Positions 1,329 through 54,213 of a stretch of DNA of 64,000 nt are shown piece after piece. Source of the DNA: Histomonas meleagridis 2922-C6/04-290x (taxonomy: Eukaryota > Protista > Parabasalia); contig JAANOX010000216.1 of the NCBI GenBank assembly GCA_020184695.1, positions 12,034-76,033 on the forward strand, read 5' to 3'. Each line of letters begins with the position of its first letter. The stretch's first letter is position 1. The notes beneath the pieces are model-generated. The model had not been told where the DNA came from. It did not search any database and worked only from the letters and a program-made list of their open reading frames with translations. The position numbers and the translations under genes were made by a program.

Positions 1329-3454
1329 TCAGTTGTATTGATATCCTTGAACATCAATTCCTTTTTGTTCAAGAAGTAATTTAACTATTTCTGTATGACC
1401 ATAATAAGATGCATACATAAGTGCTGTTATAAATAATTTAAATAATTTCCAAATATTATTTTGAAATATAAAATTATTCAAATAAATTTTAAATAAAACA
1501 ATTAAATATCTTTATCATTAATATAAATTCTTTCTTGTTCAAGAAGTAATTTAACTATTTCTGTATGACCATATAAAGATGCTAAAATAAGTGCTGTTTC
1601 AAATAATATAAATAATTTCCATATATTATTTTGAAATATCAAATTATTAAAATAAATTTTAAATAAAACGAATGAATAGATGTAAAATTAATATCAATTC
1701 CTTCTTGTTCAAGAAGTAATTTAACTATTTCTATGTAACCACATCTAGATGCTACCATAAGTGCTGTATCAAATTCTTTAAATAATTTCCAAATATTATT
1801 TTGAAATCCAGAATTATTAAAATAAATTTTATATAAAACAAATAAATATTTTTAGCATTAATATCAATTCCTTCTTGTTCAAGAAGTAATTTAACTATTT
1901 TTATATGTCCATTTTCAGATGCAAATATAAGTGCTGTTCTAAATAATTTCCAAATATTATTTTGAAATATAAAATTATTAAAATAAATTTTAAATAAAAC
2001 AGATAAATATCTTTAGCATTAATATCAATTCCTTCTTGTTCAAGAAGTAATTTAACTATTTTTATATGTCCATTTTCAGATGCATTAATAAGTGCTGTTC
2101 TAAATAATTTAAATAATTTCCAAATATTATTTTGAAATATAAAATTATTAAAATAAATTTTAAATAAAACAAATAAATATCTTTAGCATTAATATCAATT
2201 CCTTCTTGTTCAAGAAGTAATTTAACTATTTCTATATAACCTTTTGAAGATGCTACCATAAGTGCTGTGTTAGCATTAATTCCTATTGCTTTTTGCTTGA
2301 ATAAGAACTTATACATTTCTGTAGAACTAAAATTAAAATTATTTATAATTTGTAAATAAAATAATTAAATAAAACGTTAATTAAATTTTTGATACATTAA
2401 ATTTTTGATATAAAACTATAAATAAATTAATTAAATATCATCATTACTTTTAATCAATATAAATTTATTTTTAAGAATATCTTTAAAAAGTTCTTTATTT
2501 CTTGCAATTAAAATTAAACTTAAAACATTTTTAGGGATTTTATCTATATTATTATTTACAAAATATTTAAATAAAAATATATTTCCAGTTTTAATCGAAG
2601 TTTTGATAAGTTCCTCAAAATTTTTATTTTCTTTATCAATTAGAAATGAAAGTATTTCAAAATTATAATAAAAAACACATTCAATTAATAAATCAGTATG
2701 CATAATATTTTCTGATTTATTTTCATAGATGTATTTAAAAATATCATTTCGATGAAATATAATTGCTGCTTCATATGCACCTTCAAATGTTGAATGATTT
2801 TTGTTCACATAAATGAATGATTTCTTCATTCCCACTTGCAACTGCATATTTACCTGTATTTTCTACATTAGCACCATTCATAAGTAAATATTTAAAACAT
2901 TGAACTGAAGAAAAAAATGCTGCATAATCAATTAATGTAACATTTTCTTCATTTATAAATGAACAACTTTCATAAAGTGATGGTTCAATTTTTTGATTAA
3001 AATCAAAATTTATTTGTGATGATATTTCTTGAAGTTTTTCTACTTCATCATTTCGAATTGTTTTTGCTATTTCTTTTGGATTATGTACTTCTTTAATTAA
3101 TTTCTTATGAAGTTCAAAATCATTCTTTGAAAGCTCTTTGTAATTATCTAAAATTGATTGTAGAAAATTAGATTTTATATTTTTAATTTCGCTTTTTCTT
3201 TTATAGTGAATAAATAACAACGAGTTTATATATCTAATCTTATTTTCTTCAATTATTTTATTTTCAATTAATCTTTCGAGAATATAATTCGATTCTTGTG
3301 TTTTAAAATTAAAAAGAAAATCTGTAAAAATATTAATGATATTATCTTCTTTCGTTTCATTATTTGTATCTTTTTTTTGATTATATAATTCTTCTTCTTT
3401 CATTTTAAATAATTTTATATATTCAAAAATTAATTGAATATTTTCATTTCCCAT
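1329..3454 (-). CDS. DUF3447-type ankyrin gene with interrupted ankyrin modules (locus A1); head frameshifted and probably 5'-eroded
   Basis: ORFs 2783..3454 and 2431..2847 encode the HNPxEIAKxIRND...TLIDYAAFF...AVAxGNxEIIHLCEQ head, split by one extra base in a T5 run near 2798-2802. About six ankyrin modules follow (e.g. TALMVASSKGYIEIVKLLLEQEGIDINAKD), separated by spacers of 80, 71, 80, 80 and 80 nt (2099-2178, 1938-2008, 1768-1847, 1598-1677, 1428-1507). Confidence 0.75.
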
Positions 3455-3850
3455 TAAAAAATACGAATAAAGTAATTGACAAATTATAAGCTTAAATGAA
3501 TATGGATATTGATGGGTTTTAATAAATAATGTTGATTCTTTGAATTTTTCTCCTCAACTTTGTATACAAATGACTTACCTTGAAAGAACCATTATTAACA
3601 GCAATAATATTTCTTAGGTTGGCAACCTTATGATTTTACGATTGATTTGATATCCATTGAGCAAACGTTCGTTTTTTAAAATTAACGTACAATTTCCGAC
3701 CGTTTATTTATTCGGTGTTACCTTTTTTTGAGACATTGGGTGCTTGTGCTTTTGTATTTTTGTATTTTTAGAAATTGTGTGTGTTATTTTGGTTAGATAT
3801 CGTCCAAATTTGGGTGTGAGATTCCTCATATGGCTCACGATTTGGTCTGT

Positions 3851-3858
3851 GACCGTTT
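3851..3858 (+). promoter_or_regulatory. M3-like core promoter motif (GACCGTTT)
   Basis: Lies 40 nt upstream of the ATG at 3898. Matches the Trichomonas vaginalis motif-3 pattern DRCSGYTD as recalled. The same motif precedes several other starts in the window. Confidence 0.5.
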
Positions 3859-3897
3859 AATTTCTGACGAATTTTTTAAAATAGCAATCGGGAGAAC

Positions 3898-6649
3898 ATG
3901 CAAAAACGCGAAACAAATTCAAGTAAAAAAGAAAAAATATTTCCCCAAAACAAAGGACTAGAATTGTTCTCTGAGCTTGAACAAATCATAATGAATCTAA
4001 CAGAAGAAAATATAAATTTTTCAGCTATCCATACAACAAAATTATTTGATTTTTCTTTACCATATTCATTTAATCTTGTTATAAGTCAATTAATTTATTA
4101 TGCATTTTTATCACAAAGAAATAAGTGTACTACGTATTTTAAATTTTTTGAAATTATTCAAAAGAAAGAAGAGGAAAAAATTGGTTCTAAATACAATATT
4201 ATTGAAATATTTCTGAATTATATCATAAAAAATAATTCTCAAGAAGCTCTATATCTAATTGAGCAAATGATTAGACAAAATTTAATTGATGCAAATATTA
4301 CAAAGATAATTCCTTCAAAATATTTTGCTCATTACAAAACTACAACTGAAAACAAAGAATGGATTAATGATCGATTTTTTTCTACTTTTATAAAAAATTT
4401 TGAAGAATTATCAAAGAATGATTGGGAGCTTCATCAGCAATATGTTAAAGAAGGACATAATCCAAATGAAATTGCAAAAATAATTCGAAATGATGAAATA
4501 GAAAAACTTCAAGAAATATCATCACAAATAAATTTTGATTTTAATCAAAAAATTGAACCATCACTTTATGAAAGTTGTTCATTTATAAATGAAGAAAATG
4601 TTACATTAATTGATTATGCAGCATTTTTTTCTTCAGTTCAATGTTTTAAATATTTACTTATGAATGGTGCTAATGTAGAAAACACAGGTAAATATGCAGT
4701 TGCAGGTGGAAATGAAGAAATTATTCATTTATGTGAACAATGTTGTTCATCATTTAAAGGGTCTTATGAAATTGCGATTGAATTTCATCGAAATGATATT
4801 TTTCGTTATCTTTATGAAAATAAAATGGATAATTTGTATGAGGTACATGATACAGAACCTCATAGAGATTTTCTGAAATATGAAGATTTAATAAAATTTT
4901 GTGTTATAAGTGGAAATTATGAAATCCTATCATTTTTAGAAGGAGAAGGAACAAAAATCAATGAATCTATTATCAATGAATCAGCAAAAATTGGTAATGT
5001 ATATCTACTCATTCATTTTCTTCATAATAATAAGAAAATACCAAAAAATATTTTAAGTTATACTATTGAATCAGAGAATGTTGAAGTTGTGGAATATATC
5101 ATTCTTAAACATAGAAAAGAAATCAATTTTAATTCTGTAAATATTTTTTGTAAAATTTCAATGTTTTCATATCATATTTAATAATGAATTATTAAGTTAT
5201 TTAAAACACCTTTGTTATATGTTGCTGAAAAAGGTTACACTGAAATAGTTAAATTACTTCTTGAACAAGAAGGGATCGATATTAATGCTAAAGACATTTA
5301 TTGGTTTTATTTAGAATTTATTTTAATAATTTTGGGATATTTCAAAATAATATTTGGAAATTATTTAAATTATTTAGAACAGCACTTATATTAGCATCTG
5401 AAAAAGGTCATACAGAAATAGTTAAATTACTTCTTGAACAAGAAGGAATTGATATTAATGCTAAAGGTATTTATTTGTTTTATTTAATATTTATTTTAAT
5501 AATTTTCTATTTCAAAATAATATTTGGAAATTATTTATATTATTTGAAACAGCACTTATAAATGCATCTAGATATGGTTACATAGAAATAGTTAAATTAC
5601 TTCTTGAACAAGAAGGGATCGATATTAATGCTAAAGATATTTATTTGTTTTATTTGAAATTTATTTTAATAATTTTGGTATGTTTCAAAATAATATTTGG
5701 AAATTACAAAAAATATTTAAAACAGCACTTATTTTAACATCTAGAGATGGTAATTTAAAAGTAGTTAAATTACTTTTGGAACATAAAATAATTGATTTAA
5801 ATGTTAAAGATGATATTTATTTACTATAATCGATATTATATAATGTAACTTTGGTTTTTAAGCCAAAATTTGAAATTTTACTGTATAATTTGAAACACCA
5901 TTAATTTGGGCCTCAAAATATGGACATAAAGAAATAGTTAAAATACTTCTCGAAAAAGAAGGAACTAATATTAATGCCAAAAATTTTTATGTATTTTATT
6001 TAAGGTTTAAACTAATTAAAATGGATTTCTTAATGATGTTTGGAAAATATTCATATTGTTTCAAACAGCACTTATAAAGGCATCTTCAAGTGGATACACT
6101 GAAATAGCCAAATTACTTTTAGGAAAAAAAGGAATTGATGTTAATGTTCAAGACATTGTTTTTATGTTTTGTTTAGAATTTATTTATACAATTTGATATT
6201 TTAAGTGTGTATTTGGGTTTTATTTAAAATACTTGAAACACCAATTGTGTTTGCAGCTAAAAATGGTCACACAGAAATAGTTAAATTACTTCTTGAACAA
6301 GAAGGAATTGATATTAATGCTAAAGATAAATTTTTGTTAATTTATTTGATAATTATTTTAACGATTTGATATTTTAAAATAATATTTGGAATTTACTTAA
6401 AATATTTTGTACAGCACTCATGAAAGCATCGAGAAATGGTTATGCTGAAATAGTTAAATTACTTCTTGAACAAAAAGGTATTAATATTAAAGCTAAAACT
6501 ATTCACTAAATTTATTTAAAATTCAATTAAATGATATAATATTTCAAAACAATATTTGGAAATTATTGAAATTATTTGAAACAGCACTTGATTTAGCATC
6601 TTCAAAAGGTAATCAAAAAATTGTTGCGTTATTTCATGAATTTTTTTAA
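3898..6649 (+). CDS. DUF3447-type ankyrin gene with nine interrupted ankyrin modules (locus A2)
   Basis: Intact 427-codon head ORF 3898..5181. Modules start at 5206, 5379, 5549, 5722, 5895, 6065, 6238, 6411 and 6581, with spacers of 63, 83, 80, 83, 83, 80, 83, 83 and 80 nt. The terminal module TALDLASSKGNQKIVALFHEFF* ends at 6649. Confidence 0.85.
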
Positions 6650-6800
6650 AAAATTTACTGTCAATAAAAACATTATTGAATAAAATCGTATTTCCATGGC
6701 GAAAACGGTCGCAAGAAGGTTTTTTTCCAGAAAAAACGAATCCTAACATCTAACTAAATGTGATTTATAGGTAAATTTTAGTCTAAAATATTATATTATA

Positions 6801-6889
6801 ACAATTAAAATTTATATCAATTCCTTTTTATTGAAGAAGTGATTTAACTATTTCTGTGTGCCATTATAAGATGCTCTAATAAGTGCTGT
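6801..6889 (-). pseudogene. Solo degenerate ankyrin module of the interrupted family
   Basis: ACA GCA CTT ATT AGA GCA TCT TAT AAT GG-CAC ACA GAA ATA GTT AAA TCA CTT CTT CAA TAA AAA GGA ATT GAT ATA AAT = TALIRASYNG(H)TEIVKSLLQ*KGIDIN, with a 1-nt deletion and a stop. Confidence 0.75.
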
Positions 6890-7360
6890 ATTTGTTCATC
6901 GTTGGTTATTGGGCTATTTTGATGGATAGCTCTGAATGCCTCCTTTGTTGCGTCTGCCTGAAAGAATCTGTTGAGCATGTACTTGACGTAGTTATCGAAG
7001 TCCAGTGTACTTCTTGATGATTTCCTTGCATTCATCTTCGGTAGAAATCTCACCGAGTGATGTAAGGCACGAGTTAAGTTCGTATGGCTCGAGCGTCTTG
7101 CTCTTGTCCTTGTCGAAGAAGTAGAATGTTTTAAGGAATTCGTTAAGTTGTTCTTCAGAGATTTCGATACCTTTAGCATCTGCAATTGCTTTGTCTGCTT
7201 CTTGGATTAATGTCTTAATATGTGATAATGTGTTGCCGAATAATTGTGAGATAGCTGATGGTGAGTTCTCGACTTCAAATTCGAGTGAATCCTTTTCAAG
7301 TTCTTCGTATGATGGAAGGATTTCTTCGACTTTGTCCTTTTGCTTCTGGAAGCGACTAAT
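6890..7360 (-). pseudogene. ACTN: Alpha-actinin C-terminal (EF-hand) fragment, truncated at both ends and frameshifted
   Basis: Manual translation in a frame other than the track ORF gives ...EISEEQLNEFLKTFYFFDKDKSKTLEPYELNSCLTSLGEISTEDECKEIIKKYTG / LDFDNYVKYMLNRFFQADATKEAFRAIHQNSPITNDEQI, typical of the actinin EF-hand region. Codons are C-rich, as in highly expressed genes. No start codon. Confidence 0.75.
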
Positions 7361-7443
7361 TAATTAATTCTTTTCTTTAAGCACTTATCTGTATAATTCA
7401 TTTAAATCAAAAAATAACTCAAAAAGATAATTGATTGCGTTGT

Positions 7444-9480
7444 TTATGTAAATGCTATGAATACGCAAACTGCTTTTCCGTTCTCTCTCTTTGCGCACAG
7501 TGGATAAGCACCGTCTCCATAACCACTGAATGTAATAGCGCCTCCAGGAACCACTCTCATTAGTGGTGCGTCTCTATCTTCAAGTAAAGATGTGTATAAA
7601 ATGGAAAACTCTTGTTTGATTTTTTGATCTTCCTGATTTGCCATAAAAAATCCATCTCTTACCACATATTTTCCGAACCTATTCAATGCCTCCTTATCTT
7701 CAGCCATTACAACGTCATTAGTATTAAAGAAATGTGACTGTGTAATTAGCATTGACATTGCAATATCACTACCAACCAATCCGGACACTTCAAATCCAGG
7801 CATATCATCCACAGGCGTTATCTTGTTTCTCTCAATATTCTCATGATTTCCAACAACTTTCTTATATAAGTTTTCATCTGGGATTTCCTTGAGCACTTTT
7901 TTGTAATCCTTATGAACTAATATGAGTGAATTCACAACCGAATCTCTGTATTGAATTTTTGCCACCCATTTACCCCCTAAACAATTCAGTACTTTAGGCG
8001 ACTTTTCTTCAGTGGCCCATAAGTCGCCAGGGTCGATTCCAAATATTGTTTCACCATCAACCACGTCAACCTCATTATAATCCCTTGGAATTTCTTTCTT
8101 CCATTTCGTCACGGGGATTTCATCAACATTTTTACGTTTATCTTTATCAATAGCTTCAACAATTCCAAGCCATAAAAGCTCATCTTTTCGAAGACAAGAA
8201 CCGCTATGATGTGATGAAGATAACCTCAAACTTGATAAGTCTGACATGTTATCTGGCAGATTTATCATTGCTGCATGGATAACATTATTCTCATTAGTGG
8301 TGACGAACCTTGTGTTTTGGGACTTATAAAAGATCGGGGCTCCAATTTTGGTTAATATTTCGATCTCATCAACTTCTTTGTAATCCTTTGATTTAAATTC
8401 TTTTGGTACTTTTCCAAACCCTTTTACGACTTTATAATTACAATACGGCTTTGCTGGGAGATACATATCGTATTTATTTTCTTCTTTTTTCATATCAAAT
8501 GCTTCTGGATATTTCGGAATATATTGAACATAATTAAGTTCTAATGGTGGTTTGTATTTATATTGATTACTAAGTTCAAATTGGATGTCATTAACGTTAA
8601 TAATTTTCCCAAGTTTATAATTATATCCCGAAATAACATGATAATGTTGATGTTGTTCAACAATGGCTTCTTTAAATACAATTGCAATGCGATCATTGCT
8701 AATGATTGAGATACAATACACTTCGGATTTAATGGCAATGTTAGTAATTCCATGAAATAGCTCATGCGTATTCGGATTATAAAGCGTAAACTCAAGATCG
8801 GCATCGGAGTTATGCGGAAACATCATATTGGATGGCCTGTTAATGGAAAGAAGACCTTTTGTTGGTAATGAAATTGTTGTGAATCCAAAATATTCTGCTG
8901 ACTCATCAATATGTTGAATAATCAGTTCGTCTGACTTAGGAACGAAAAGGAAAAGATGGTGGTCATTAGTAATATAGTATTTACCATCAAATTGTTGAGG
9001 AATAATAATTGGAATATTTTCATTGTCATGATTACGAGAAGAGAATTTGGAATTACAGTATATGCGTTCAGGTGGAATTGGTTTGCCACTGGATGACATG
9101 GCTGTGAGATTGATCGGCTTGATTTCGGTTTCGGTTATTAATAAAGTTTGATGTGATTTGGATAAAATGTAATAATTGCCTTCGAAGTTGATGAGGGATA
9201 AATCGTAATTACTATCAACGTTCTCTTGAAATGTGGATAATATTGTATCAGTATCACGATATAAAAGAAATGCATTAACTCCGTTACAACGAATCCAAAG
9301 AAGGTTTAGGTCTTGAGATAATTGAATTTGCAAATTAGAATATGATTGTTGAAGAAAATCATACTTGGAAAGTAATGGGGACTGTTGAGCATCGAAGAAA
9401 GCAACATTTTTGCTTTTGATGAATTGTACGTCTTCACCATTTTCAATGATTTCGCCAAATGGAGTTGCGTATTTCTGCAT
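7444..9480 (-). CDS. Hypothetical protein (about 678 aa) with a C-terminal FSGYGDGAYP motif (DUF4241-like)
   Basis: Long open frame. The track start is TTG; the first ATG at 9480 is preceded by an Inr-like TCACTT. Confidence 0.8.
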   Translation of the reverse strand: MQKYATPFGEIIENGEDVQFIKSKNVAFFDAQQSPLLSKYDFLQQSYSNLQIQLSQDLNLLWIRCNGVNAFLLYRDTDTILSTFQENVDSNYDLSLINFEGNYYILSKSHQTLLITETEIKPINLTAMSSSGKPIPPERIYCNSKFSSRNHDNENIPIIIPQQFDGKYYITNDHHLFLFVPKSDELIIQHIDESAEYFGFTTISLPTKGLLSINRPSNMMFPHNSDADLEFTLYNPNTHELFHGITNIAIKSEVYCISIISNDRIAIVFKEAIVEQHQHYHVISGYNYKLGKIINVNDIQFELSNQYKYKPPLELNYVQYIPKYPEAFDMKKEENKYDMYLPAKPYCNYKVVKGFGKVPKEFKSKDYKEVDEIEILTKIGAPIFYKSQNTRFVTTNENNVIHAAMINLPDNMSDLSSLRLSSSHHSGSCLRKDELLWLGIVEAIDKDKRKNVDEIPVTKWKKEIPRDYNEVDVVDGETIFGIDPGDLWATEEKSPKVLNCLGGKWVAKIQYRDSVVNSLILVHKDYKKVLKEIPDENLYKKVVGNHENIERNKITPVDDMPGFEVSGLVGSDIAMSMLITQSHFFNTNDVVMAEDKEALNRFGKYVVRDGFFMANQEDQKIKQEFSILYTSLLEDRDAPLMRVVPGGAITFSGYGDGAYPLCAKRENGKAVCVFIAFT

Positions 9481-12138: not shown

Positions 12139-13700
12139 TCACTTAAAATTTAAACCAAAGGGACTCGGGAAACGCATCTGATTAAATCCATTGTTGTTTG
12201 GTCCTTTTTCATTAAGTAATTGTTTTATTTCTCTGAGACCTAACTGTTGAGCAATTTCAATATGAAGTGCTGTTTCAAGTGATTAAAACATATTCTAAAT
12301 TATTAAAACATATTATAAATTATTCAAATGAATATCTTTTGCATTCACATCAATTCCTTCTTTATCTAAAAGTAATTTTACTATTTCTATATTATTATTT
12401 CTAACTGCTATATGAAGTGCTGTTTCAAATTATTAAAACATATTCCAAATTATTAAAACATATATCAAATTATTCAAATGAATATTTTTTGCATTAACAT
12501 CAATTCCTTCATTATCTAAAAGTAATTTTACTATTTCTATATTTCTTGATTTAACTGAATATGGTAAAATTGTATTTGGAATTTGTTGACTTTGTATATC
12601 ACTTTCTATTATGAATGTATTTCCTTTTGATGCTATTTCTTCAATAATTTCATTATTCATTTTCATTCCTTCTTTTACTAAAAACATTAAGATTTCATAA
12701 TTATTAAATTCCATACATTTTTTTCCAAGATATATTAAATTTTCTTCACTTAAATTACAATTATCTTGACTTTCGATATTGGAATTCGATTTTTTAAAAG
12801 AAAATGATGAAGATGACTTTTGTTTATCATTGGAAATTTTTCCAATTTTATTTTCATAAAGATACGAAAAATTTCATTTTGATGAAATTCTATCGCTGTT
12901 TCATATGCGTTTTCAAATGATGAATTGTTTTGTTCGCATAAATGAATAATTTCTAAGTTTCCACCTGCAATTGCATATTTAGGTGTATTTTTGATATTCG
13001 AATTATTTAACAACAAATATTTAAAACATTTAATCGAACCAAAAAATGCGCAATAATCAATTAATGAAACATTTTCAGTATTAACAAATGAGCATCTTTC
13101 ATAAAGTGATGGTTCAATTCTTTGATTAAAATTAAAACCATTTTGTGATGATATTTCTTGAAGTTTTTCTAAATCATCATTTCGAAGCACTTTCGCAATT
13201 TCTGATGGATTAACTCCTTCTTTTACATATTGAATATGAAGCTTCAAAGCATCTTTTGATAATTTATGAGGTTCTGCCCATTTGTTCATTAATTCATTCA
13301 TTTTTTCTTTTGTTTTAAATTGAGAAAAATATAATTTGCTCATGCTGTTTACGGTAGATGGTTCAGGTATTTCTTCTTCGATCATCTTTTCAAGAAGGAA
13401 ATATGATTCTTGATTTTCTATTCCAAGCAAATATTCACAAAATATTTGCACAAGATTAGCTTCAGTTAAACTTTTGTTTTTTGCTTTTTCTTCTTCTTTT
13501 GCTTTTAATGTAAATAAATATTTAACATATATATTTTCATTATTATGTTGAGAAACAAAAGCTGAGTATATAAATCTGGAAATAAGATAGTTAAATGTAT
13601 AAGGTAGATTATCAACAAATAAATTAATTGTTGCTTGAACAGATGTTTCAAAATTTTTTTCGTTGAGATTGAAGACAATGGATTCTAATGATTTCGATCA
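12139..13700 (-). pseudogene. DUF3447-type ankyrin gene with two 60-nt spacers (locus A3); several 1-nt frameshifts (pseudogene or sequence errors)
   Basis: The head frame is open from about 13690 through ORF 12750..13451, with frameshifts near 13697, 12868 and 12720, and continues in ORF 12433..12714. Modules are TALHIAVRNNNIEIVKLLLDKEGIDVNAKD and terminal TALHIEIAQQLGLREIKQLLNEKGP...FK* (12139..12273). Each spacer is three 20-nt units. Confidence 0.7.
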
Positions 13701-19659: not shown

Positions 19660-22600
19660 TTAATAACAAATACATTTCGCAGGAGATTTCTTACTAATTA
19701 AATCCGCGATGTTGGTATATGAATTTTTTATTGCAAGGGAAAGAGCTGTGTCAAACTATTAAAATGAATTCCAAATATCATTTTAAATCATCACGTTACT
19801 AAAATTAACATTATCTACAACATTAATATCAATATTTTCTTCATCAAGAAGAATTTCTACGATTTGGAAAAATCCATTTTCAGATGCCTTCATAAGTGCT
19901 GTTTGAAATATTTTAAGTCAATTCCAAATAAAATTTTGATATCCGAAATAAATAAAAAAAATATCAAAACAAGTAAACAAATATCTTGAGCATTAATATC
20001 AATTCCTATTTGATACAGAAGTATTTTAACAACGCCTTTGTTTCCTTTTTCAGATGCTTTTATAAGTGCTGTTTGAAATATTTTACGTCAATTCCAAATA
20101 ATATTTTGATATCCAAAATAATTAAAAAGAATATCAAAACAAGTAAACAAATATCTTTAGCATTAATATCAATTCCTTTTTCAAGAAGTAACCGAACAAC
20201 GCCCATATTTCCTTTACTAGATGCACAAATTAGTGCTGTTTTATAAATTTTTATCAAATTCCAAATAATATATTCGAATATAAAATATTTCAAGTTTACA
20301 ATAATTAAGACAAATTGATATCCCTTACATTTATATCAATATTTTTGTGTTTAAGAAGGAAACCAACAATTTCATATTGGCATGCTTCAGCTGCAAATAT
20401 AATTGCAGTTTCATATCATTTTAATATATTCCATGCAATAATAAGTAATTCCAAATAATTTATATACACTAAAAATAAGCAAATAATACACTTTTCGCAT
20501 TTATATCAATACTTTCTTGTGCAAGTAGTAATTTAACTACATCAATATTACCCATTAAAGATGCTTTCATTAATGATGTATAAAATATTTCAAATAAATA
20601 CAAAATTTAATGACAAAATCAGAAATTATTTAAATAAACATTATAATCAGTAAAGCAAAAATCTTTAGCATTAATATCAATTCCTTCTTGTTCAAGAAGT
20701 AATTTAACTATTTCTATATGACCATTTTTAGATGCTATGATAAGTGCCGAATCAAATAATTGAAACAATTACCAAATATTATATAAAAATACCAAATTAT
20801 TTAAGCAAAAACCAAATAAACTAATTAAATATTTTTAGCATTAATATCAATTCCCTCTTGTTCAAGAAGGAATTTAACTGTTTCTGTTTTGCCATTTTGC
20901 GATGCAATAATAAGTGCAGAGTCAAATAATTAAAACAATTACCAAATATTATATCAAAATACCAAATTATTAAAATAAATATTAAATAAACAAATCAAAT
21001 ATTTTTAGCATTGATATCAATTCCTTCTTGTTCAAGAAGTAATTTAACTATTTCTATATAACCATTTTTAGATGCTAAAATAAGTGCTGAATCAAATAAT
21101 GTAATTAATTACCAAATATTAGTTTAAAGCAGAAAATTATTTAAACAAAAATCAAATAAACAAATCAAATATTTTTAGAACTAATATCAATTCCCTCTTG
21201 TTCAAGAAGAAACTTAACTGTTTCTAATTTACCATTTTTAGATGCGGAAATAAGTGCTGAATCAAATAAAATAAACAATTGCCAAATATAATTTTGAAAC
21301 AGAAAATTATTTGAATAAATTTTATTTTTATCATTAATATCAATTCCTTCTTGTTCAAGAAGTAATTTAACTATTTCTATATGACCATTTTTAGATGCCA
21401 CAATAAGTGCTGAATCAAATAATATAAATAATTACCAAATATTATATAAAAATACCAAATTATTTAAACAGAAATCAAATCAAACAAACAAATACCTTTA
21501 GCATTGATATCAATTCCTTCTTGTCCAAGAAGAAACTTAACTGTTTCTGTTTTACCATTTTTAGATGCGGAAATAAGTGCTGAATCAAATAATTTAAACA
21601 ATTACCAAATATAATTTTGAAACAGAAAATTATTTGAATAAATTTTATTTTTATCATTAATATCAATTCCTTCTTGTTCAATAAGAAACTTAACTGTTTC
21701 TGTTTTACCATTTTTAGATGCTACAATAAGTGCTGAATCAAATAATATAAATTATTACCAAATATTATATAAAAATATCAAATTATTTAAACAGAAATTA
21801 AATAAACAAATTAAATATTTTTAGCGTTAATATCAATTCCTTTACTAAGAAGAAATTTAAACATTTCAATATGGTCATATTTTGACGCCAAAATAAGAAC
21901 TGTATTAAATAACTTCAATAATTTCCATATGAAATATTGAATTATCAATATATTAGAAGAAAAATCAAATAGTATATATAAATATCTTTGGTATTAATAT
22001 TAATCAATCCTTGAGTTAAAAGATTTTGAATTGTTTTAACATTTCCCTTTTCTAATGCTTTATTAACTTTCTTGAGAAATATTTTGATGAGATTTTATAT
22101 TTTATTATTAAACCCAAAATTAACAAAATAAATATTTTTCATACTATTTACGTCAATTCCATTTTGTTCAAGAAATAGTTGAAATATTTCTCTTCGATTT
22201 TTTTTTGCTGCCCAAATAAGTGCTGTTCTAAATATTTAAAACAATTTTCATATGTTATTTTGAGACTTTAATTTGTTAAAATAAAATTTAAATAGAGCAA
22301 ATAAATATCTTTAGCATTAATATCAATTCCTTCTTGTTCAAGAAGTAATTTAACTATTTCTATATGACCATTTTCAGATGCTAATATAAGTGCTGTATCA
22401 AATAATTTAAATAATTTCCAAATCTTATTTTGAAATATAAAACCATTAAAATAAATTTTAAATAAAACAGATAAATATCTTTAGCATTAATATCAATTCC
22501 TTCTTGTTCAAGAAGTAGTTTAACTATTTCTATTTGACCATTTTCAGATGCTAATATAAATGCTGTTTTAAATAATATAAATAATTTTCAAATATTATTT

Positions 22601-25154
22601 TGAAACCCAAAATTATTAAAATAAATTCTAAATAAAACAAATAAATATCTTTAGCATTAATATCAATTCCTTCTTGTTTAAGAAGTAATTCAACAATTTC
22701 TGTGTGACCATTTTCAGATGCCAAAATAAGTGCTGTATCAAATAATTTAAATAATTTCCAAATATTATTTTGAAATATAAAATTATTAAAATAAATTTCA
22801 AATAAAACAAACAAATACTTTTAACATTAATATCAATTCCTTTCTGTTCAAGCAATACTTTCGTTATTCCTATTATACCTTCAGAACAAGAAACCATAAG
22901 TGGATTTTGTAATATTAAGAATAATTTTTAAATATTATTTAGAAATACTTAATAATGCTTAAAATACATAGGAAATAAATCAAATAAATATTTTTGATAT
23001 CAATATCAACGTTTTTGTACTTAATGAGTAATTTTAATAGTTCTGACTGATCATTCCACGTTGCCCACCAAAGTAACTTTTCAAATTTTATAAATAAATT
23101 CCAAAAATCAACAAAAAATCTTATATTAAACAAATTAACACTTTTAGAATCAATATCAAAATTTTTATGTTTAAGAAGTAATTTAACTATTTTCATGTTA
23201 CCTTTTTGAGATGCAATCATAATTGCTGTAAGAAATATTTCAAATAGTTTTTAAATAACTTAATAAAATTTTGAATATCAATAACAAATTGCAAATAAAA
23301 TAATTTGATATTTTGTGCCATTATATCAAGTTCATCTTTTTTAACAAGCAATTTTATAATATCAACATGTTGATTTTCGGCTGCCCATATAAGTACTTTC
23401 TCAAATATTTTAAATAATTACCAAATATTTCTTTAAAGCATTAAATCATTATGATAAATTTTATATAAAATAATTATAATATTTCAACATTAGCATCACA
23501 ATTTTTATGTTCAAGAAGTAATTTAAATATATCAAAATAATTATTTGAAAATGCCTTCATAACTGCTGTTTCATATATTTTGAATAATTATTAAATATTA
23601 TATTAAAATATATAATCAATAAGATAAACATAAATTTTAAAATGTAAATATCTTTGGAATTTATGTCAATATCTTCAAATTCAAGAAGTAATTTAACTAT
23701 ATCAATATGGCCTTTTTCAGATGCATACATAAGTGCTGTTCTAAATAATTTAAATAAATACTAAATATTATTTTGATATCAAAAATCATTAAAACAAACA
23801 AAAAAAATAAACAATAAAACACCATTAGCATAATTAATATTAATATCTTTATGTTTAAGAAGTAATTTAACTACTTCTGTATGACCTTTAATAGATGCAA
23901 TTATTAATGCTGGATAAAATATTTTAAATAATTTTTATAAAATATGTTTAAATATGATGAGAACATTAAAATAAATATTAAGTAAAACAAATAAATATCA
24001 ATTGCATTAATATCAATTCCTTCTTGTTCAAGAAGTAATTTAACCATTTCGATATCACCTTTTTCAGATGCTTCCATAAGAAATGTATAAAATAATTTAA
24101 ATAATTTCCAAATATTATTTTGAATCACGGGTTTATGATATTTTGAAATATCAAGACAAATAAATAAATAATTCTGCAATTTATATCAATTCCTTTTTGT
24201 TTAAGAAGTATTTTGAACATTTCTACTTTACCATTTTTGAATGATTCAATAAGTGCTGTTTGAATTATTTTGAATAATTTCCAAATATTATTATGAAATA
24301 TAAAATTATCAGAAGAAATTTTAAATAAAACAAATAAATACTAAAAGCATCAATATCAATTCCTTCTCGTTCAAGAAGTAATTTAACAATTTCTGCATAA
24401 CCTTTTCCAGCAGCAATAATAAGTGCTGTTTCAAATAATTTAAGTAATTTCCAAATATTATTTTTAAGTATCAAAATATTGTCATAAATTTTAAATAAAA
24501 CAAATAAATATCTTTAGCATTAACATCAATTCCTTCTTGTTCAAGTAGTAATTTAACCATTTCTACATTACCTTTTTTAGATGCCATAATTAATGCTGAT
24601 TGAAATAATTCGAATAATTTCCAAATATTATTTTGAAATAAAATATTAATCAAATAAAACTGAATTAAAACAAATAAATATCTTTAGTATTAACATCAAC
24701 TCCTTCTTTATTAAGTAATAATTTCATTATTTGTGTGTGGCCATTTTGATATGCTTTCATAAATGCTGTTTCAAATGTTATGAATAAATTCCAAAAATTA
24801 TTTTAATACATGCAATCATAAGAACAAATACTAAATCAATTAAATAAATATCTTTAGAATTAACATCAATTCCTTCATGTTCAAGTAATAATTCAACTTT
24901 TTCTGTATAGCCTTTTATGCATGCCCATATTAGTGCTGTAAAAAATTATTTTAACAATATCCAAATTTTATTTGAAAATATAAAATTATTAAATTAATCT
25001 GAAAATGAAATTTTGAGATATCTTTAGCATTTACATCAATTCTTTTTTGATCTAGAAATAATTTAAAGTTTTCTGGAGTCAATCGATTAACAGCCTTTAT
25101 AATTTTTGGAAAAAATAAATCAAATAATCTCCTAATATGATTTTGAAATATCAT
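19660..25154 (-). other. Array of 33 diversified ankyrin modules, each separated by a spacer, with no DUF3447 head (locus A4)
   Basis: Module starts counted by hand from about 25110 and 24939 down to 19749, with periods of 150/153/167/170/173 nt. An ATG at 25154 lies in a half-spacer. The terminal capping module is TALSLAIKNSYTNIADLISKKSPAKCICY*. Most small track ORFs in 20.0-25.2 kb are single modules running into spacers. Confidence 0.85.
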
Positions 25155-30382: not shown

Positions 30383-30394
30383 TCCCACTACCAT

Positions 30395-41432: not shown

Positions 41433-41437
41433 AATAG

Positions 41438-45025: not shown

Positions 45026-48000
45026 ATGACGAACAATGTTACTAATGATGATACTAATGTCTTAAACACAGGAAATAAAAATTTAAATTATTTATCAATC
45101 TGCTTGAAATTCCTAAATGAGCTTGAGAAAACTATATTCAGTTTAACATAAGAAAACTTTCAGACGTACTTTACAAAAGTATTGGGATTTTTTGATTCAA
45201 ATTATCCCTATACATTTAATACGATTAATATATATTATTACCATTATAAGTAATATAGTTTTTAATGCATTTTCATCACGAAAACAAGTATTTGATATTT
45301 ACATAAATTTTTTAAAAGAACTTCAAATGAAAGAAGAAGAAATTAATCAAAATATCGTTAAATTAATATCAATTTTTATCAAACGTATATCTACAACGAA
45401 CACACAAGAATCATATTATTTAATAGAACAAATGATTGAACAAAATTTAATTGATAAAAATATCACCAAAAATATTAATTCAAAATATTTTGCACATTAT
45501 AAACCAAAAGAAGAAAATCAAATCCAAATGACATTTGGATCTAATAGAAATGATCCGATAGAAAAATACTTTTTGGATAATCATTTATAATATGTTTTAA
45601 TAATTTGGAATATGTTTTAATAATTTAAAATATGTTTTAATAATTTAAAATATGTTTTAATAATTTGAAATATGTTTTAATAATTTAAAATATGTTTTAA
45701 TAATTTAAAATATGTTTTAATAATTTGAAATATGTTTTAATAATTTAAAATATGTTTTAATAATTTGAAATATGTTTTAATAATTTAAAATATGTTTTAA
45801 TAATTTGAAACAGCACTTCATATAGCAGTTAGAAATAATAATATAGAAATAGTAAAATTTACTTTTAGATAAAGGAATTGATGTTAATGCAAAAACTATT
45901 CATTTGAATAATTTGGAATATGTTTTAATAATTTGAAATATGTTTTAATAATTTAAAATATGTTTTAATAATTTGACACAGCACTTCATATAGCAGTTAG
46001 AAATAATAATATAGAAATAGTAAAATTACTTTTAGATAAAGGAATTGATGTTAATGCAAAAAACATTCATTTGAATAATTTGGAATATGTTTTAATAATT
46101 TGGAATATGTTTTAATAATTTGGAATATGTTTTAATAATTTGACACAGCACTTCATATAGCAGTTAGAAATAATAATATAGAAATAGTAAAATTACTCTT
46201 AGATAAAGGAATTGATGTTAATGCAAAACTATTTATTTGAATAATTTGGAATATGTTTTAATAATTTGAAATATGTTTTAATAATTTGGAATATGTTTTA
46301 ATAATTCGGAATATGTTTTAATAATTTGGAATATGTTTTAATAATTTGGAATATGTTTCAATAATTTGGAATATGTTTTAATAATTTGACACAGCACTTC
46401 ATATAGCAGTTAGAAATAATAATATAGAAATAGTAAAATTACTTTTAGATAAAGGAATTGATGTTAATGACATTCATTTGAATCATTTATAATATGTTTT
46501 AATAATTTGGAATATGTTTTAATAATTTGGAATATGTTTTAATAATTTGACACAGCACTTCATATAGCAGTTAGAAATAATAATATAGAAATAGTAAAAT
46601 TACTTTTAGATAAAGGAATTGATGTTAATGCAAAAAACATTCATTTGAATCATTTATAATATGTTTTAAAAATTTTGGAATATGTTTTTAATAATTTGGT
46701 TTATGTTTTAATAATTTGAAACAGCACTTCATATAGCAGTTAGAAATAATAATATAGAAATAGTAAAATTACTTTTAGATAAAGGAATTGATGTTAATGC
46801 AAAAAAAAAAAAAAAAATAATTTTAATAATTTTGGATTTATTTTAATAATTTGGAATATGTTTTAATAATTTGGAATATGTTTTTTATAATTTGGAATAT
46901 GTTTTAATAATTTGGAATATGTTTTAATAATTTGACACAGCACTTCATATAGCAGTTAGAAATAATAATATAGAAATAGTAAAATTACTTTTAGATAAAG
47001 GAATTGATGTTAATGCAAAAAACATTCATTTGAATAATTTGGAATATGTTTTAATAATTTAAAATATGTTTTAATAATTTAAAATATGTTTTAATAATTT
47101 AAAATATGTTTTAATAATTTAAAATATGTTTTAATAATTTGGAATATGTTTTAATAATTTAAAATATGTTTTAATAATTTGAAATATGTTTTAATAATTT
47201 AAAATATGTTTTAATAATTTAAAATATGTTTTAATAATTTGAAATATGTTTTAATAATTTAAAATATGTTTTAATAATTTGAAACAGCACTTCATATAGC
47301 AGTTAGAAATAATAATATAGAAATAGTAAAATTACTTTTAGATAAAGGAATTGATGTTAATGCAAAAACTATTCATTTGAATAATTTGGAATATGTTTTA
47401 ATAATTTGAAATATGTTTTAATAATTTAAAATATGTTTTAATAATTTGACACAGCACTTCATATAGCAGTTAGAAATAATAATATAGAAATAGTAAAATT
47501 ACTTTTAGATAAAGGAATTGATGTTAATGCAAAAAACATTCATTTGAATAATTTGGAATATGTTTTAATAATTTGGAATATGTTTTAATAATTTGGAATA
47601 TGTTTTAATAATTTGACACAGCACTTCATATAGCAGTTAGAAATAATAATATAGAAATAGTAAAATCACTTTTTAGATAAAGGGAATTGATGTTAATGCA
47701 CATTCATTTGAATAATTTGGAATATGTTTTAATAATTTGGAATATGTTTTAATAATTTGGAATATGTTTTAATAATTTGGAATATGTTTTAATAATTTGG
47801 AATATGTTTTAATAATTTGGAATATGTTTCAATAATTTGGAATATGTTTTAATAATTTGGAATATGTTTTAATAATTTGACACAGCACTTCATATAGCAG
47901 TTAGAAATAATAATATAGAAATAGTAAAATTACTTTTAGATAAAGGAATTGATGTTAATGCAATTCATTTGAATCATTTTATAATATGTTTTAATAATTT

Positions 48001-49325
48001 GGAATATGTTTTAATAATTTGGAATATGTTTTAATAATTTGAAACAGCACTTCATATAGCAGTTAGAAATAATAATATAGAAATAGTAAAATTACTTTTA
48101 GATAAAGGAATTGATGTTAATGCAAAAAACATTCATTTGAATAATTTGGAATATGTTTTAATAATTTGGAATATGTTTTAATAATTTGGAATATGTTTTA
48201 ATAATTTGGAATATGTTTTAATAATTTGGAATATGTTTTAATAATTTGGAATATGTTTTAATAATTTGGAATATGTTTTAATAATTTGGAATATGTTTTA
48301 ATAATTTGGAATATGTTTTAATAATTTGACACAGCACTTCATATAGCAGTTAGAAATAATAATATAGAAATAGTAAAATTTACTTTTAGATAAAAGGAAT
48401 TGATGTTAATGCAAAAAACATTCATTTGAATCATTTATAATATGTTTTAATAATTTGGAATATGTTTTAATAATTTGGAATATGTTTTAATAATTTGAAA
48501 CAGCACTTCATATAGCAGTTAGAAATAATAATATAGAAATAGTAAAATTACTTTTAGATAAAGGAATTGATGTTAATGCAAAAAACATTCATTTGAATCA
48601 TTTATAATATGTTTTAATAATTTGGAATATGTTTTAATAATTTGGAATATGTTTTAATAATTTGAAACAGCACTTCATATAGCAGTTAGAAATAATAATA
48701 TAGAAATAGTAAAATTACTTTTAGATAAAGGAATTGATGTTAATGCAAAAAACATTCATTTGAATCATTTATAATATGTTTTAATAATTTGGAATATGTT
48801 TTAATAATTTGACACAGCACTTCATATAGCAGTTAGAAATAATAATATAGAAATAGTAAAATTACTTTTAGATAAAGGAATTGATGTTAATGCAAAAACT
48901 ATTCATTTGAATAATTTGGAATATGTTTTAATAATTTGAAATATGTTTTAATAATTTAGAATATGTTTTAATAATTTGAAACAGCACTTGAAATAGCACA
49001 ACATTTTGGTTACACAGAAATCATAAATTTACTCCTTGAAAAAAGTACAAACGAAAATTCTAATTCAGATTCCTCTTCTACAAATATCAAATCTTCATTT
49101 TCAATCAGAAATAGAAATGAAGCATATATTGCTAATAATCAAAATCAACTCAAAGATCGAATGTATGCAGAAAACAATCGAAATAATTGTATCAAAACAA
49201 AAGTTGATATAAACACACAAACATATGAAAATCATCGAAATTGCAATATACAACATAACAAATATCACCACAAAGCAAAATATTTTATAATAATCGCTTT
49301 GGGTTCAAATGAATCGAAATTTTGA
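45026..49325 (+). pseudogene. DUF3447-family ankyrin paralogue with an internally deleted head and a homogenised module array (locus A5)
   Basis: The N-terminus parallels 50618, but has a premature TAA (TTA ACA TAA vs GAA) and a frameshift. The head is cut at about 45581 and joined directly to 20-nt repeats. There are 16 near-identical modules TALHIAVRNNNIEIVKLLLDKGIDVNAK[NT] (45810-48900) and an open 114-codon terminal module/tail at 48981..49325. Confidence 0.75.
45582..48980 (+). repeat. Compound tandem repeat: 87-nt ankyrin module plus n x 20-nt unit (ATATGTTTTAATAATTTGGA)
   Basis: Module-to-module distances are 147-347 nt, about 87+20n with n = 3 to 13 and a mode of 4. Confidence 0.9.
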
Positions 49326-50586: not shown

Positions 50587-50594
50587 GACCGTTT
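50587..50594 (+). promoter_or_regulatory. M3-like core promoter motif (GACCGTTT)
   Basis: Ends 23 nt upstream of the ATG at 50618. Confidence 0.5.
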
Positions 50595-50617
50595 ATTGAC
50601 AATTATTTTGCTAAAGC

Positions 50618-53600
50618 ATGCCTAATGATGATACTGCCAAAAACACAGGGGACAAACAGTTGGGTGATCTGTCAACCTGCTTGAAATTCCTAATTGAGCT
50701 TGAGAAAACTATTTTCAGTTTAACAGAAGAAAACTTTCAGATGTACTTTACAAAAGTATTGGAATTATTCGATTCAAATTATCCCTGTACATTTAATATT
50801 ATTATAAGTAACATCGTTTATAATGCATTTTCATCACAAAAACATGAATTTGATATTTACTTAAATTTTTTAAAAGCACTTCAAACTAAAGAAGAAGAAA
50901 TTAATCAAAACACAGTTAAACTAATATCAATTTTTATCAAACGTATATCTACATTCAGCACACAAGAATCATATTATTTAATAGAACAAATGATTGAACA
51001 AAATTTGGTTGATAAAAATATAACTAAAAACATTAAATCAAAATATTTTGCTCATTATAAAACAGAAAAAGAAAATCATTTTTCATTTGGGTCTAATAGA
51101 TATGATCCAATAGAAAAATACTTTTTGGATAATTATGAAGAACTTTCAAAGAATGATTGGGAACTTCATAAGAAGTATATTAAAGAAGGAAATAATCCAA
51201 CTGAAATTGCGAAAATAATTCGAAAAGATAAAATCGAAAAACTTCAAGAAATATCATCACAAAGTAATTTTGATTTTAATCAAACAATTGAGCCATCACT
51301 TTATGAAAGATGTTCATTTATTAATCATAAAAATGTTACATTAATTGATTATGCAGCATTTTTTGGATCAGTTAAATGTTTTAAATATTTACTTATGAAT
51401 GGCTTTAACATAAATAATACAGGTAAATATGCTGTTGCAGGTGGAAATCTTGAAATTATTCATTTATGTGAACAGAATCATTCATCATTTGAAGGTTCAT
51501 ATGAAACAGCAATTAAATTCCATCAAAATGATATCTTTAAATATGTTTATGAGAATAAATTAGAAAAAATACGATCAACACCGAAAATGTCTGAAGATAA
51601 AACTAATGATTTAATCAGCTTCTGTATTTTAAATGATAATTATGAAATTTTAGCATTTTTGGAAGAAAAAGGAAATAATATTAATGCGGGTGATATAAAT
51701 GAATCAGCAAGAAATGGGAATTTATATCTCGCTAAACATTTCCTTCAAAAAAATCAAATTCCAAAAGATATTTTATTATTTGCTTCAGAATCAGGAAATA
51801 TTGAACTTGTGAAATATGTTTTGGAACAAAAAGGAATTGATGTTAATGCAAAATATATTCATTTGAATAATTTTATATATGTTTTAATAATTTGGAATAT
51901 GTTTTAATAATTTGGAATATGTTTTAATAATTTATAATATGTTTTAATAATTTTATATATGTTTTAATAATTTGGAATATGTTTTAATAATTTGGAATAT
52001 GTTTTAATAATTTATAATATGTTTTAATAATTTGAAATATGTTTTAATAATTTGGAATATGTTTTAATAATTTGGAATATGTTTTAATAATTTGACACAG
52101 CACTTCATATAGCAGTTAGAAATAATAATATAGAAATAGTAAAATTACTTTTAGATAAAGGAATTGATGTTAATGCAAAAAACATTCATTTGAATCATTT
52201 ATAATATGTTTTAATAATTTGGAATATGTTTTAATAATTTGGAATATGTTTTAATAATTTGGAATATGTTTTAATAATTTGACACAGCACTTCATATAGC
52301 AGTTAGAAATAATAATATAGAAATAGTAAAATTACTTTTAGATAAAGAAGGAATTGATGTTAATGCAAAAACTATTCATTTGAATAATTTGGAATATGTT
52401 TTAATAATTTATAATATGTTTTAATAATTTGGAATATGTTTTAATAATTTGACACAGCACTTCATATAGCAGTTAGAAATAATAATATAGAAATAGTAAA
52501 ATTACTTTTAGATAAAGAAGGAATTGATGTTAATGCAAAAAACATTCATTTGAATAATTTGGAATATGTTTTAATAATTTATAATATGTTTTAATAATTT
52601 GGAATATGTTTTAATAATTTGACACAGCACTTCATATAGCAGTTAGAAATAATAATATAGAAATAGTAAAATTACTTTTAGATAAAGAAGGAATTGATGT
52701 TAATGCAAAAACTATTCATTTGAATAATTTGGAATATGTTTTAATAATTTGGAATATGTTTTAATAATTTGAAATATGTTTTAATAATTTGACACAGCAC
52801 TTCATATAGCAGTTAGAAATAATAATATAGAAATAGTAAAATTACTTTTAGATAAAGGAAAACATTCATTTGAATCATTTATAATATGTTTTAATAATTT
52901 GGAATATGTTTTAATAATTTGAAATATGTTTTAATAATTTGGAATATGTTTTAATAATTTGACACAGCACTTCATATAGCAGTTAGAAATAATAATATAG
53001 AAATAGTAAAATTACTTTTAGATAAAGGAATTGATGTTAATGCAAAAAACATTCATTTGAATAATTTGGAATATGTTTTAATAATTTGGAATATGTTTTA
53101 ATAATTTAGAATATGTTTTAATAATTTAGAATATGTTTTAATAATTTGGAATATGTTTTAATAATTTAGAATATGTTTTAATAATTTGAAATATGTTTTA
53201 ATAATTTGACACAGCACTTCATATAGCAGTTAGAAATAATAATATAGAAATAGTAAAATTACTTTTAGATAAAGGAATTGATGTTAATGCACATTCATTT
53301 GAATCATTTATAATATGTTTTAATAATTTGGAATATGTTTTAATAATTTGAAATATGTTTTAATAATTTGACACAGCACTTCATATAGCAGTTAGAAATA
53401 ATAATATAGAAATAGTAAAATTACTTTTAGATAAAGGAATTGATGTTAATGCAAAAAACATTCATTTGAATCATTTATAATATGTTTTAATAATTTGGAA
53501 TATGTTTTAATAATTTGAAATATGTTTTAATAATTTGAAACAGCACTTCATATAGCAGTTAGAAATAATAATATAGAAATAGTAAAATTACTTTTAGATA

Positions 53601-54213
53601 AAGAAGGAATTGATGTTAATGCAAAAATTATTCATTTGAATAATTTAGAATATGTTTTAATAATTTGGAATATGTTTTAATAATTTGAAATATGTTTTAA
53701 TAATTTGAAACAGCACTTCATATAGCAGTTAGAAATAATAATATAGAAATAGTAAAATTACTTTTAGATAAAGGAATTGATGTTAATGCAAAATATATTC
53801 ATTTGAATAATTTGGAATATGTTTTAATAATTTGGAATATGTTTTAATAATTTGGAATATGTTTTAATAATTTGACACAGCACTTCATATAGCAGTTAGA
53901 AATAATAATATAGAAATAGTAAAATTACTTTTAGATAAAGGAATTGATGTTAATGCAAAAATACATTCATTTGAATCATTTATAATATGTTTTAATAATT
54001 TGGAATATGTTTTAATAATTTGGAATATGTTTTAATAATTTGACACAGCACTTCATATAGCAGTTAGAAATAATAATATAGAAATAGTAAAATTACTTTT
54101 AGATAAAGGAATTGATGTTAATGCAAAAACTATTCATTTGAATAATTTGGAATATGTTTTAATAATTTGGAATATGTTTTAATAATTTGGAATATGTTTT
54201 AATAATTTGAAAT
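50618..54213 (+). CDS. DUF3447-type ankyrin gene with 12 homogenised interrupted modules, 3'-truncated by the palindrome (locus A6)
   Basis: Intact 429-codon head ORF. The first spacer is 51857..52096 (240 nt, 12 units). Modules start at 52097, 52284, 52454, 52624, 52794, 52964, 53211, 53373, 53540, 53710, 53877 and 54045. There is no terminal module; the array stops inside a 20-nt unit. Confidence 0.8.

Follow-up and report, generated by a model that had tools for sequence, protein, structure and literature searches.

A stretch of 64,000 nucleotides (nt) of the parabasalid Histomonas meleagridis (contig JAANOX010000216.1, positions 12,034 to 76,033; here, the window) carries genes for ankyrin-repeat proteins in which each repeat module is followed by an AT-rich spacer. 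The spacer is not one intervening sequence but n units, each consisting of a 17-nt insert and one kept codon, and taking out the inserts in silico joins the modules into long open reading frames (ORFs). The Histomonas genome paper reports 43 Mb with 28% GC, assembled from Nanopore and Illumina reads and annotated with AUGUSTUS, and few introns (PMC8529796); ankyrin genes go unmentioned there. A preliminary description of the window had proposed interrupted ankyrin genes in six loci with about 80 junctions, and knew of no earlier account of such a system. We found none either in the literature on Histomonas, Dientamoeba, introns of parabasalids, introns of ankyrin genes, non-canonical introns and micro-exons.

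Interrupted ankyrin arrays of the window

Searching the window with a profile of the 30-codon module, built from eight modules, revealed seven arrays, located on both strands, that together comprise around 80 ankyrin modules, with 72 interrupted junctions and about 319 inserts. The interrupted modules are real. They are distributed among the following genes (positions of the arrays are from the module profile):

1329-3454, minus strand: gene A1, with a head ORF at 2783-3454, a complex first junction, and six modules with five junctions (array 1338-2322).
3898-6649, plus strand: gene A2, with a head exon, nine junctions holding 35 inserts, nine ankyrin exons and a terminal exon (array 5206-6649).
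12139-13451, minus strand: gene A7, with a DUF3447 head, two junctions and a C-terminal cap exon with a unique tail (array 12334-12573).
19660-25227, minus strand: arrays A4 and A3, probably one gene, with a short N-terminal exon, about 33 diverged ankyrin exons and a cap exon (arrays 19813-22073 and 22137-25109).
45027-49322, plus strand: array A5, with a truncated head containing an in-frame TAA and 17 near-identical modules (array 45808-49070).
50618-54213, plus strand: gene A6, with an intact DUF3447/Ank head at 50618-51856 followed by 12 modules (array 51767-54131).

Each module is 87 or 90 nt long and reads T-[AP]-L ... [IV]-N-A-K-[DN], and the spacer follows it at an identical codon boundary, carrying stops or shifting the reading frame, as the preliminary description had recognized. 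The length and segmentation statistics cover 90 junctions of the window and of related loci. The spacer is exactly 80 nt in 57 of them; in the others it measures 83, 63, 60, 100 nt or other lengths to a maximum of 260 nt. Family 1 spacers (n = 41) comprise 29 of 80 nt, seven of 83 nt, two of 63 nt and one each of 71, 81 and 84 nt, whereas family 2 spacers, found in A5, A6 and A7, are built on a 20-nt repeat and have lengths of 60, 80, 100 and up to 260 nt. Single spacers are matched exactly by Illumina-derived DNA contigs and are therefore real DNA, not assembly artefacts. The arrays begin with heads that contain an ATG and finish with cap repeats, unique tails and stop codons. The heads of A2 and A6 are intact ORFs, as had been claimed, and match DUF3447 and Ank, placing the products among ankyrin-repeat proteins (Pfam Ank/Ank_2) of the DUF3447-type trichomonad family. 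The head ORF at 3898-5181 has paralogues that GCA_020186115.1 lists as 'caskin-like' proteins of approximately 420-506 amino acids (aa).

The modules keep their length and frame. Among 43 modules, each with around 16 differences from the consensus, there is no in-frame stop, against 27 ± 5 expected when the observed differences of each module are placed at random (1,000 simulations, minimum 12). By the same test, stops in the two open frames of the consensus spacer number 37 and 30 (34.5 and 32.4 expected), as in neutral sequence. Module insertions and deletions occur only in threes, with the exception of array A5, and the neutral stops and frameshifts of a decaying pseudogene or satellite are, again outside A5, absent from the modules. 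Diversity at framework codons is 0.27, 0.14 and 0.30 at positions 1, 2 and 3 (0.30 in spacers), and rises to 0.37-0.51 at the surface codons 5, 8, 9, 11, 12 and 28-30; leucine codons alternate between CTT and TTA while remaining leucine. The whole-module ratio of non-synonymous to synonymous differences (pN/pS), a check of the dN/dS kind for which the preliminary description had called, is about 0.9, a value that misleads because it mixes hypervariable codons with framework codons, in which the second position is constrained. Taken together, these data demonstrate that the modules are under coding selection and the inserts are not.

Inserts of 17 nucleotides between single codons

In spacers of 80 nt, the kept codons lie at positions 18-20, 38-40, 58-60 and 78-80, each preceded by a 17-nt insert. 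Across the 57 spacers of this length, none of the 228 codons in these slots is a stop, against around 16 expected from the base frequencies of the slots themselves, whereas triplets read one base earlier (starting at 17, 37, 57 and 77) include 29, 18, 11 and 38 stops. The third slot encodes glycine in 45 of 57 spacers (79%; GGA 36, GGT 7, GGG 2), and the GC content is 34.5% in slots and 10.7% in inserts. The T at spacer positions 17, 57 and 77 is invariant, and the triplets that follow these T's are unusually variable. The slots provide exactly the four codons that the preliminary description had found missing from each repeat, and these codons lie inside the spacer. The predicted loops, among them KYGR, KDGE, NSGE, KNGE, KWGQ, DDGN and NDGD, would complete the canonical D-x-x-G-x-T ankyrin hairpin with classical ankyrin tips.

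The layout also accounts for the length classes: 80 nt is 4 x (17 + 3), 83 nt has one codon more, 63 nt has one insert fewer, and 60-260 nt corresponds to 3-13 units. When only 17-nt inserts and non-stop codons are permitted between known modules, the lengths of all 90 junctions fit 17a + 3b and 78 of them segment with zero bases left over. The classes of (inserts, codons) are (4,4) in 57 junctions, (4,5) in seven of 83 nt and (3,4) in three of 63 nt, with (3,3), (5,5), (7,7), (8,8), (10,10), (12,12) and (13,13) also seen; irregular junctions are mostly in A5. Gene A2, on the plus strand, illustrates the arrangement:

3898-5142: head exon, comprising the N-terminal region, DUF3447 and the first ankyrin repeats.
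5143-5205: first junction (63 nt, from segmentation), with inserts at 5143-5159, 5163-5179 and 5186-5202 and kept codons AAT (5160-5162), AAT AAT (5180-5185) and AAA (5203-5205).
5469-5548: type junction (80 nt, from sequence, slot statistics and segmentation), with inserts at 5469-5485, 5489-5505, 5509-5525 and 5529-5545 and kept codons AAT (5486-5488), TCT (5506-5508), GGA (5526-5528) and GAA (5546-5548), giving the loop N-S-G-E between ...NAKG and TAL...
6578-6649: terminal exon, comprising the kept codon GAA and a C-terminal capping repeat with the stop.

These results replace the single 80- or 83-nt spacer per repeat of the preliminary description. A reading in which each repeat contains one non-canonical intron of 77-80 nt, removed in a single step as the whole spacer or as all but its ends, has in its favour the strikingly constant spacer length and a 5' end that begins R-T; it would nevertheless leave repeats of 30-31 residues without a hairpin, and it does not explain the stop-free, glycine-rich triplets at 18-20, 38-40 and 58-60, length classes that differ by 17, 3 or 20 nt, or the linkers of 12-15 nt with the pattern x-x-G-x in RNA contigs described below. 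We consider it very improbable. The version in which the first 9 nt and the last 3 nt are retained is excluded by at least ten junctions whose second spacer codon is TAA or TGA, and the 'conserved last 3 nt' once taken for a 3' end are a kept codon. A single intron ending 3 nt ahead of the module was likewise superseded by the four-slot result.

The insert profile, compiled from 228 inserts (184 from Histomonas and 44 from relatives), has a constant length of 17 nt and the consensus R(A.75, G.20)-T-T-T-R-T-T-T-N-A-A-T-W-A(.86)-T-T-T(.92-.94). Overall, 95% of inserts begin with a purine and 82% have T at +2, so that the 5' end looks like a splice site. In Histomonas, the first base is A in 154 of 184 inserts (84%) and G in 20, and 166 end in TT; among the inserts of relatives, G comes first in 26 of 44, usually as GT or GC. 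An A occurs at position 10 or 11 in 79% of inserts and at position 14 in 86%, and the codons flanking the inserts are purine-rich (R-R-W). No covariation of the first with the last insert bases, or of either with the flanks, was found. As the preliminary description had stated, GT-AG boundaries are not general: no pair of offsets near the spacer ends provides GT-AG or AT-AC in all junctions, and the parabasalid CTAAC..AG branch motif is absent from the spacers; CTAACNNNNAG has one match in the window, against 2.6 expected, and it lies outside them. The CAG of ACA-GCA, already doubted as a general acceptor, is merely part of Thr-Ala codons, and relatives use ACG, ACC or ACT for this threonine. 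RNAalifold predicted zero pairs for 38 junctions with their flanks. Derivation of the spacer from a decayed ankyrin module was also considered and gave unconvincing local alignments (p = 0.04-0.08).

In family 2, the 20-nt unit of codon and insert has been amplified 3 to 13 times, giving predicted loops rich in Gly, Lys and Glu. Both A7 junctions (12424-12483 and 12274-12333) are 60 nt and consist of three inserts and three codons. The junctions of A5 are formed by a homogeneous unit (one codon and the insert ATATGTTTTAATAATTT), present three to 13 times, and twelve 20-nt units are fused straight onto the head of this array. Junctions of 10-13 units (46937-47283, 48044-48330 and 51857-52096) would encode low-complexity loops, such as ten residues that are almost all Gly or a Lys/Glu-rich 13-mer, the 20-nt unit acting like a minisatellite that expands within a coding loop.

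Restored reading frames, relatives and RNA contigs

With its inserts retained, the A2 head ORF stops at 5181. Once the 35 inserts are taken out of A2, one ORF encoding 718 aa begins with the ATG at 3898 and closes with the stop at 6647-6649; zero bases remain over, and its nine regular repeats have D-x-x-G-x-T loops. In A6, removal of 60 inserts opens a frame of 847 aa that extends to the last parsed module. The same operation on an H. meleagridis paralogue (L003; positions 4001-7614 of WSYJ01000186.1, GCA_020186115.1) removes 16 inserts and gives an ORF of 1113 aa that merges two annotated genes of 506 aa and 505 aa. In this paralogue, the exon past the fourth spacer runs for 505 codons and is a separate gene in the public annotation, with the start ATG of its model overlapping both the final insert and the final kept codon. 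Probably, the public gene set mis-splits the whole ankyrin family; by cutting genes into truncated heads and orphan ORFs it mis-annotates a large ankyrin family of an important poultry parasite.

Gut-metagenome contigs from relatives share the layout, again with spacers of 80 nt. Their heads are 47-53% identical in five contigs (L001, L002, L005, L006 and L007) and 33% in L004. Their spacers align gap-free with the Histomonas consensus at 60-84% identity (40% expected), often begin with GT or GC and have a G every 20 nt. Removal of 24 inserts from L005 gives 584 aa with no stop, open to the contig end, and removal of eight from L007 also leaves the frame open to the contig end. One junction of L006 (1851-1868) is insert-free and has a 12-nt loop, GTC ATG TTT GAG (V-M-F-E), followed by a junction with four inserts; it is either an exact loss or a pre-insertion state. 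Together with the 63-nt junctions, this exact absence points to turnover of inserts at codon boundaries.

The layout in relatives bears on the possibility that arrays carrying inserts are silent, as decaying pseudogenes, a 170-bp satellite or donor cassettes would be, that their modules are tidied by gene conversion from insert-free ankyrin genes, and that those genes are the source of the RNA contigs. The stop in the A5 head and the frameshifted A5 modules would suit such a state, as would the insert-free junction of L006, the published models that terminate head proteins in the first spacer, and the incomplete counting of joints in the DNA run described below. However, the spacer codon slots have no conversion partner and yet avoid stops and keep Gly; heads, cap exons and the 505-aa C-terminal ORF are open and in register only with the inserts removed; and the layout is kept in relatives with heads just 33-53% identical. 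Furthermore, distances between modules correlate with distances between spacers (r = 0.56, Mantel p <= 0.0005), which indicates that module and spacer are inherited as one unit, and framework-spacer distances do so too (r = 0.59), arguing for joint descent in place. Silent arrays are therefore an unlikely explanation.

For the transcript, we compared the region 3800-6800 with contigs of three RNA runs from 2023 and one DNA run from 2021 (X1). RNA contigs pass from the end of one module to the next through 12-15 non-matching letters, and these linkers read ENGH, EYGW, RSGN, KLGI, KGGR, KWGK, QNEE, DYRV and KNRK. The contigs break at predicted exon ends, 6327, or 6330 where a codon directly follows the module, and resume at the predicted exon starts 5376, 5379 and 5719. 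An RNA contig that matches the A2 tail exactly (run X4) begins at 6578, exactly where the last exon is predicted to start. The abundance of insert positions (5333 and 5677-5680) relative to adjacent modules is lower in RNA than in DNA by a factor of 6 to 160. The preliminary description had suggested a search for spacer-less DNA: 12 of the 15 best-supported RNA joints have no contig in X1, where the counting of joints is incomplete. A search of the runs with three unique spacers recovered 0.42 of sampled words in DNA runs and 0.19-0.33 in RNA runs, too sparse to inform, and no junction peptides came from the protein database, whose matches for this organism are all sourced from ENA or NCBI. 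Taken together, removal of the inserts at the level of RNA is well supported, if short of proof, and is the best explanation among the three routes that had originally been left open.

The second of these routes, excision of the inserts from the DNA of expressed nuclei, as in the eliminated sequences of ciliates, would suit inserts that are short, AT-rich, precisely bounded and variably present. It is opposed by the DNA runs, which hold the insert-bearing form at full depth and, in an incomplete count of joints, almost no joined forms, and nuclear dualism is not known in parabasalids; we regard this route as highly improbable. The third, in which the messenger RNA (mRNA) keeps the inserts and ribosomes pass over them by hopping or frameshifting, strikes us as barely credible. 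In its favour, the young family 1 consensus spacer (for example, 22397-22476) is open in both the upstream and downstream frames, with all five TAA in the third, and 37 of 41 family 1 spacers have a length of 3n + 2. Older family 1 spacers nevertheless lose this two-frame openness at the neutral rate, which also led us to reject translation through the spacer with a -1 shift; the two-frame openness fits growth by frame-keeping duplications. Moreover, at least 35 hops would be needed per mRNA, take-off and landing codons differ, no matching pattern exists at insert ends or flanks, spacer lengths vary in 20-nt steps, and RNA contigs are already insert-free.

Several observations weigh against removal of the inserts from the transcripts of these genes. 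None of the RNA contigs viewed is an exact spliced copy of a window locus, and the joined forms derive from better-expressed paralogues, not from the window loci; with joints in the DNA run incompletely counted, insert-free paralogues could explain some of them. Insert-bearing contigs are also present in the RNA runs, where they could be precursor mRNA or contaminating DNA. The missing AG, the missing CTAAC and the A at +1 in 84% of Histomonas copies oppose an ordinary spliceosomal reaction. At a score passed by three quarters of the true inserts, 111 look-alikes occur outside the arrays, against 57 by shuffling, and contigs of the RNA runs still contain two that lie in the A2 head, at 4196-4212 and 4309-4325. 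In this AT-rich genome the motif by itself does not suffice to specify the sites, and a further determinant must contribute, perhaps the 20-nt register of the tandem units, the ankyrin setting or a guide acting in trans. Finally, array A5 indicates that some members are decaying. Three of its modules have homopolymer-type frameshifts, and it is probably either a pseudogene or a sequence damaged by errors of the long-read (Nanopore) assembly.

Individual genes show further detail. A1 has the loops KYGR, KWGD, KDGE and KYGI, one damaged insert and a stop near 1329; its first junction (2272-2440, minus strand) is irregular, with several inserts that start with GT and one of 18 nt, and a partial module there joins the next as ...G-I-N-A-N|T-A-L, with zero loop codons. 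The stop codon of A7 lies at 12139-12141, and its head has a 1-nt frame break within 12840-12900 (minus strand; ...ttt cgt atc ttt atg..., where paralogues read F-R-Y-L-Y-E-N) that reflects either a true frameshift or a homopolymer wrongly assembled. Junctions of A4 and A3 measure 80, 83, 63, 81 and 84 nt, and the cap-exon stop is at 19660-19662. The remaining genes of the window are long uninterrupted ORFs, encoding a poly(A) polymerase, a WD40 protein, an XPG-type nuclease and a Rab, and Rfam and transfer RNA (tRNA) scans gave no match. The very AT-rich region 56000-64000 contains virus-like genes, identified by domain matches, and may be a Maverick/Polinton-like or giant-virus-like insertion. 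A D5-type primase-helicase (DUF5906/VapE-like, E = 1e-20) and a poxvirus A22-type RuvC resolvase (E = 6e-7) were matched there, in the following ORFs:

62232-63896, minus strand: virus-like ORF with a domain match.
58218-58811, plus strand: virus-like ORF with a domain match.

Proposed excision and known systems

We conclude that these are real, selected ankyrin genes in which, probably, 17-nt inserts between loop codons are removed from the transcript and the codons are kept. About four hairpin-loop codons per repeat would be split by U-rich inserts exactly between codons; with the inserts gone and the single codons retained, the mRNA would encode ordinary ankyrin repeats of 33-34 residues and loop-spanning peptides such as ...NAKGNSGETALINASR. 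As a guess at the reaction, splicing might measure length, akin to metamonad mini-introns with a fused 5' splice site, branch site and 3' splice site; it would do without AG, mostly with A at +1, and would cut the inserts one after another, so that each 3-nt exon first joins a large neighbour. Local multiplication of the elements seems to proceed by 20-nt units of codon and insert, and also along with whole repeats. More tentatively, and as a possibility rather than a probability, Histomonas and its relatives may possess a previously undescribed RNA cut-and-rejoin system that excises exactly 17 nt without GT-AG and builds mRNA from single-codon exons; its elements would spread as 20-nt units and 'encrypt' a family of the order of a thousand repeats, and its machinery would be either a re-tooled spliceosome or separate, with extra guides.

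Short inserts that interrupt a frame and leave the protein intact are familiar from T4 gene 60 and the mitochondrial 'byps' of Magnusiomyces. These translational bypass elements stay in the mRNA, whereas RNA contigs lack the inserts described here. In U12-type introns, the 5' end is RTATCCTT and the branch site, TCCTTAAC, lies 10-15 nt from the 3' end; the insert shares only the R-T start, and its profile is almost free of C. Euglenid nonconventional introns form large families without GT-AG that are removed from RNA, have paired ends and vary in length. The inserts lack the conserved pairing of structure-defined introns in general, whether of the bulge-helix-bulge type of archaea and tRNA, the IRE1 type or the hairpin type of euglenids and Amoebophrya. 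The introner elements of Amoebophrya likewise constitute large repeated families that lack GT-AG and are removed from RNA (PMC7789003), but they have terminal inverted repeats or pairing and variable length, in contrast to the zero predicted pairs, fixed 17 nt and single-codon exons found here.

Exons down to 3 nt are spliced in animals and plants (PMC8831610, PMC7935315). Such micro-exons are rare and lie between long GT-AG introns with special enhancers, whereas here there are three 3-nt exons per repeat, 17 nt apart. Closer in size are the introns of Stentor coeruleus, among the smallest spliceosomal introns, which have 15-16 nt, GT-AG ends and a conserved A at position 10 of 15 (PMC9505925). 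They resemble the inserts in extreme shortness, near-fixed length, AU-richness and an A 5-7 nt from the 3' end, here at position 10 or 11, and differ in being GT-AG introns between normal exons, whereas the inserts run R-T ... T-T, mostly with A at +1, in tandem around 3-nt exons. We know of and found no precedent for three features: the lack of AG, A as the +1 base, and 3-nt exons standing three in a row.

The lineage itself offers the other close comparison. Introns of parabasalids and diplomonads number around 60-100 per genome, with one to few per gene at most, and are strictly GT-AG; the type B introns of Trichomonas have 23-25 nt, the 5' motif GTWYWD..TT and [AT]CTAAC fused to the 3' AG (PMC12316389, PMC6679479). 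The inserts share with them an extended 5' motif, fused signals and tight length: GTWYWD..TT resembles the 5' half of the insert, G/A-T-T-T-R-T-T-T (PMC12316389), and the length-constrained, signal-fused introns of metamonads recall its fixed length, R-T start, A about 4-7 nt from the end and U-rich body (PMC6679479). In contrast to the canonical parabasalid intron, the insert has neither GT-AG ends nor an [AT]CTAAC-AG branch motif, is shorter than 23 nt, and occurs in hundreds of copies per 64 kb. Standard RNA-seq aligners would miss such junctions. The inserts appear to spread by duplicating locally in 20-nt steps, and single ones are exactly present or absent. If excised from RNA, the insert would be an intron-like element outside every described class, of 17 nt, running R-T...T-T and arranged in tandem around 3-nt exons; it would move the known bounds on the size of introns and exons, and on what defines a splice site, in a lineage regarded as almost devoid of introns, and would make testable the minimal sequence and space for splicing and the origin and multiplication of intervening sequences.

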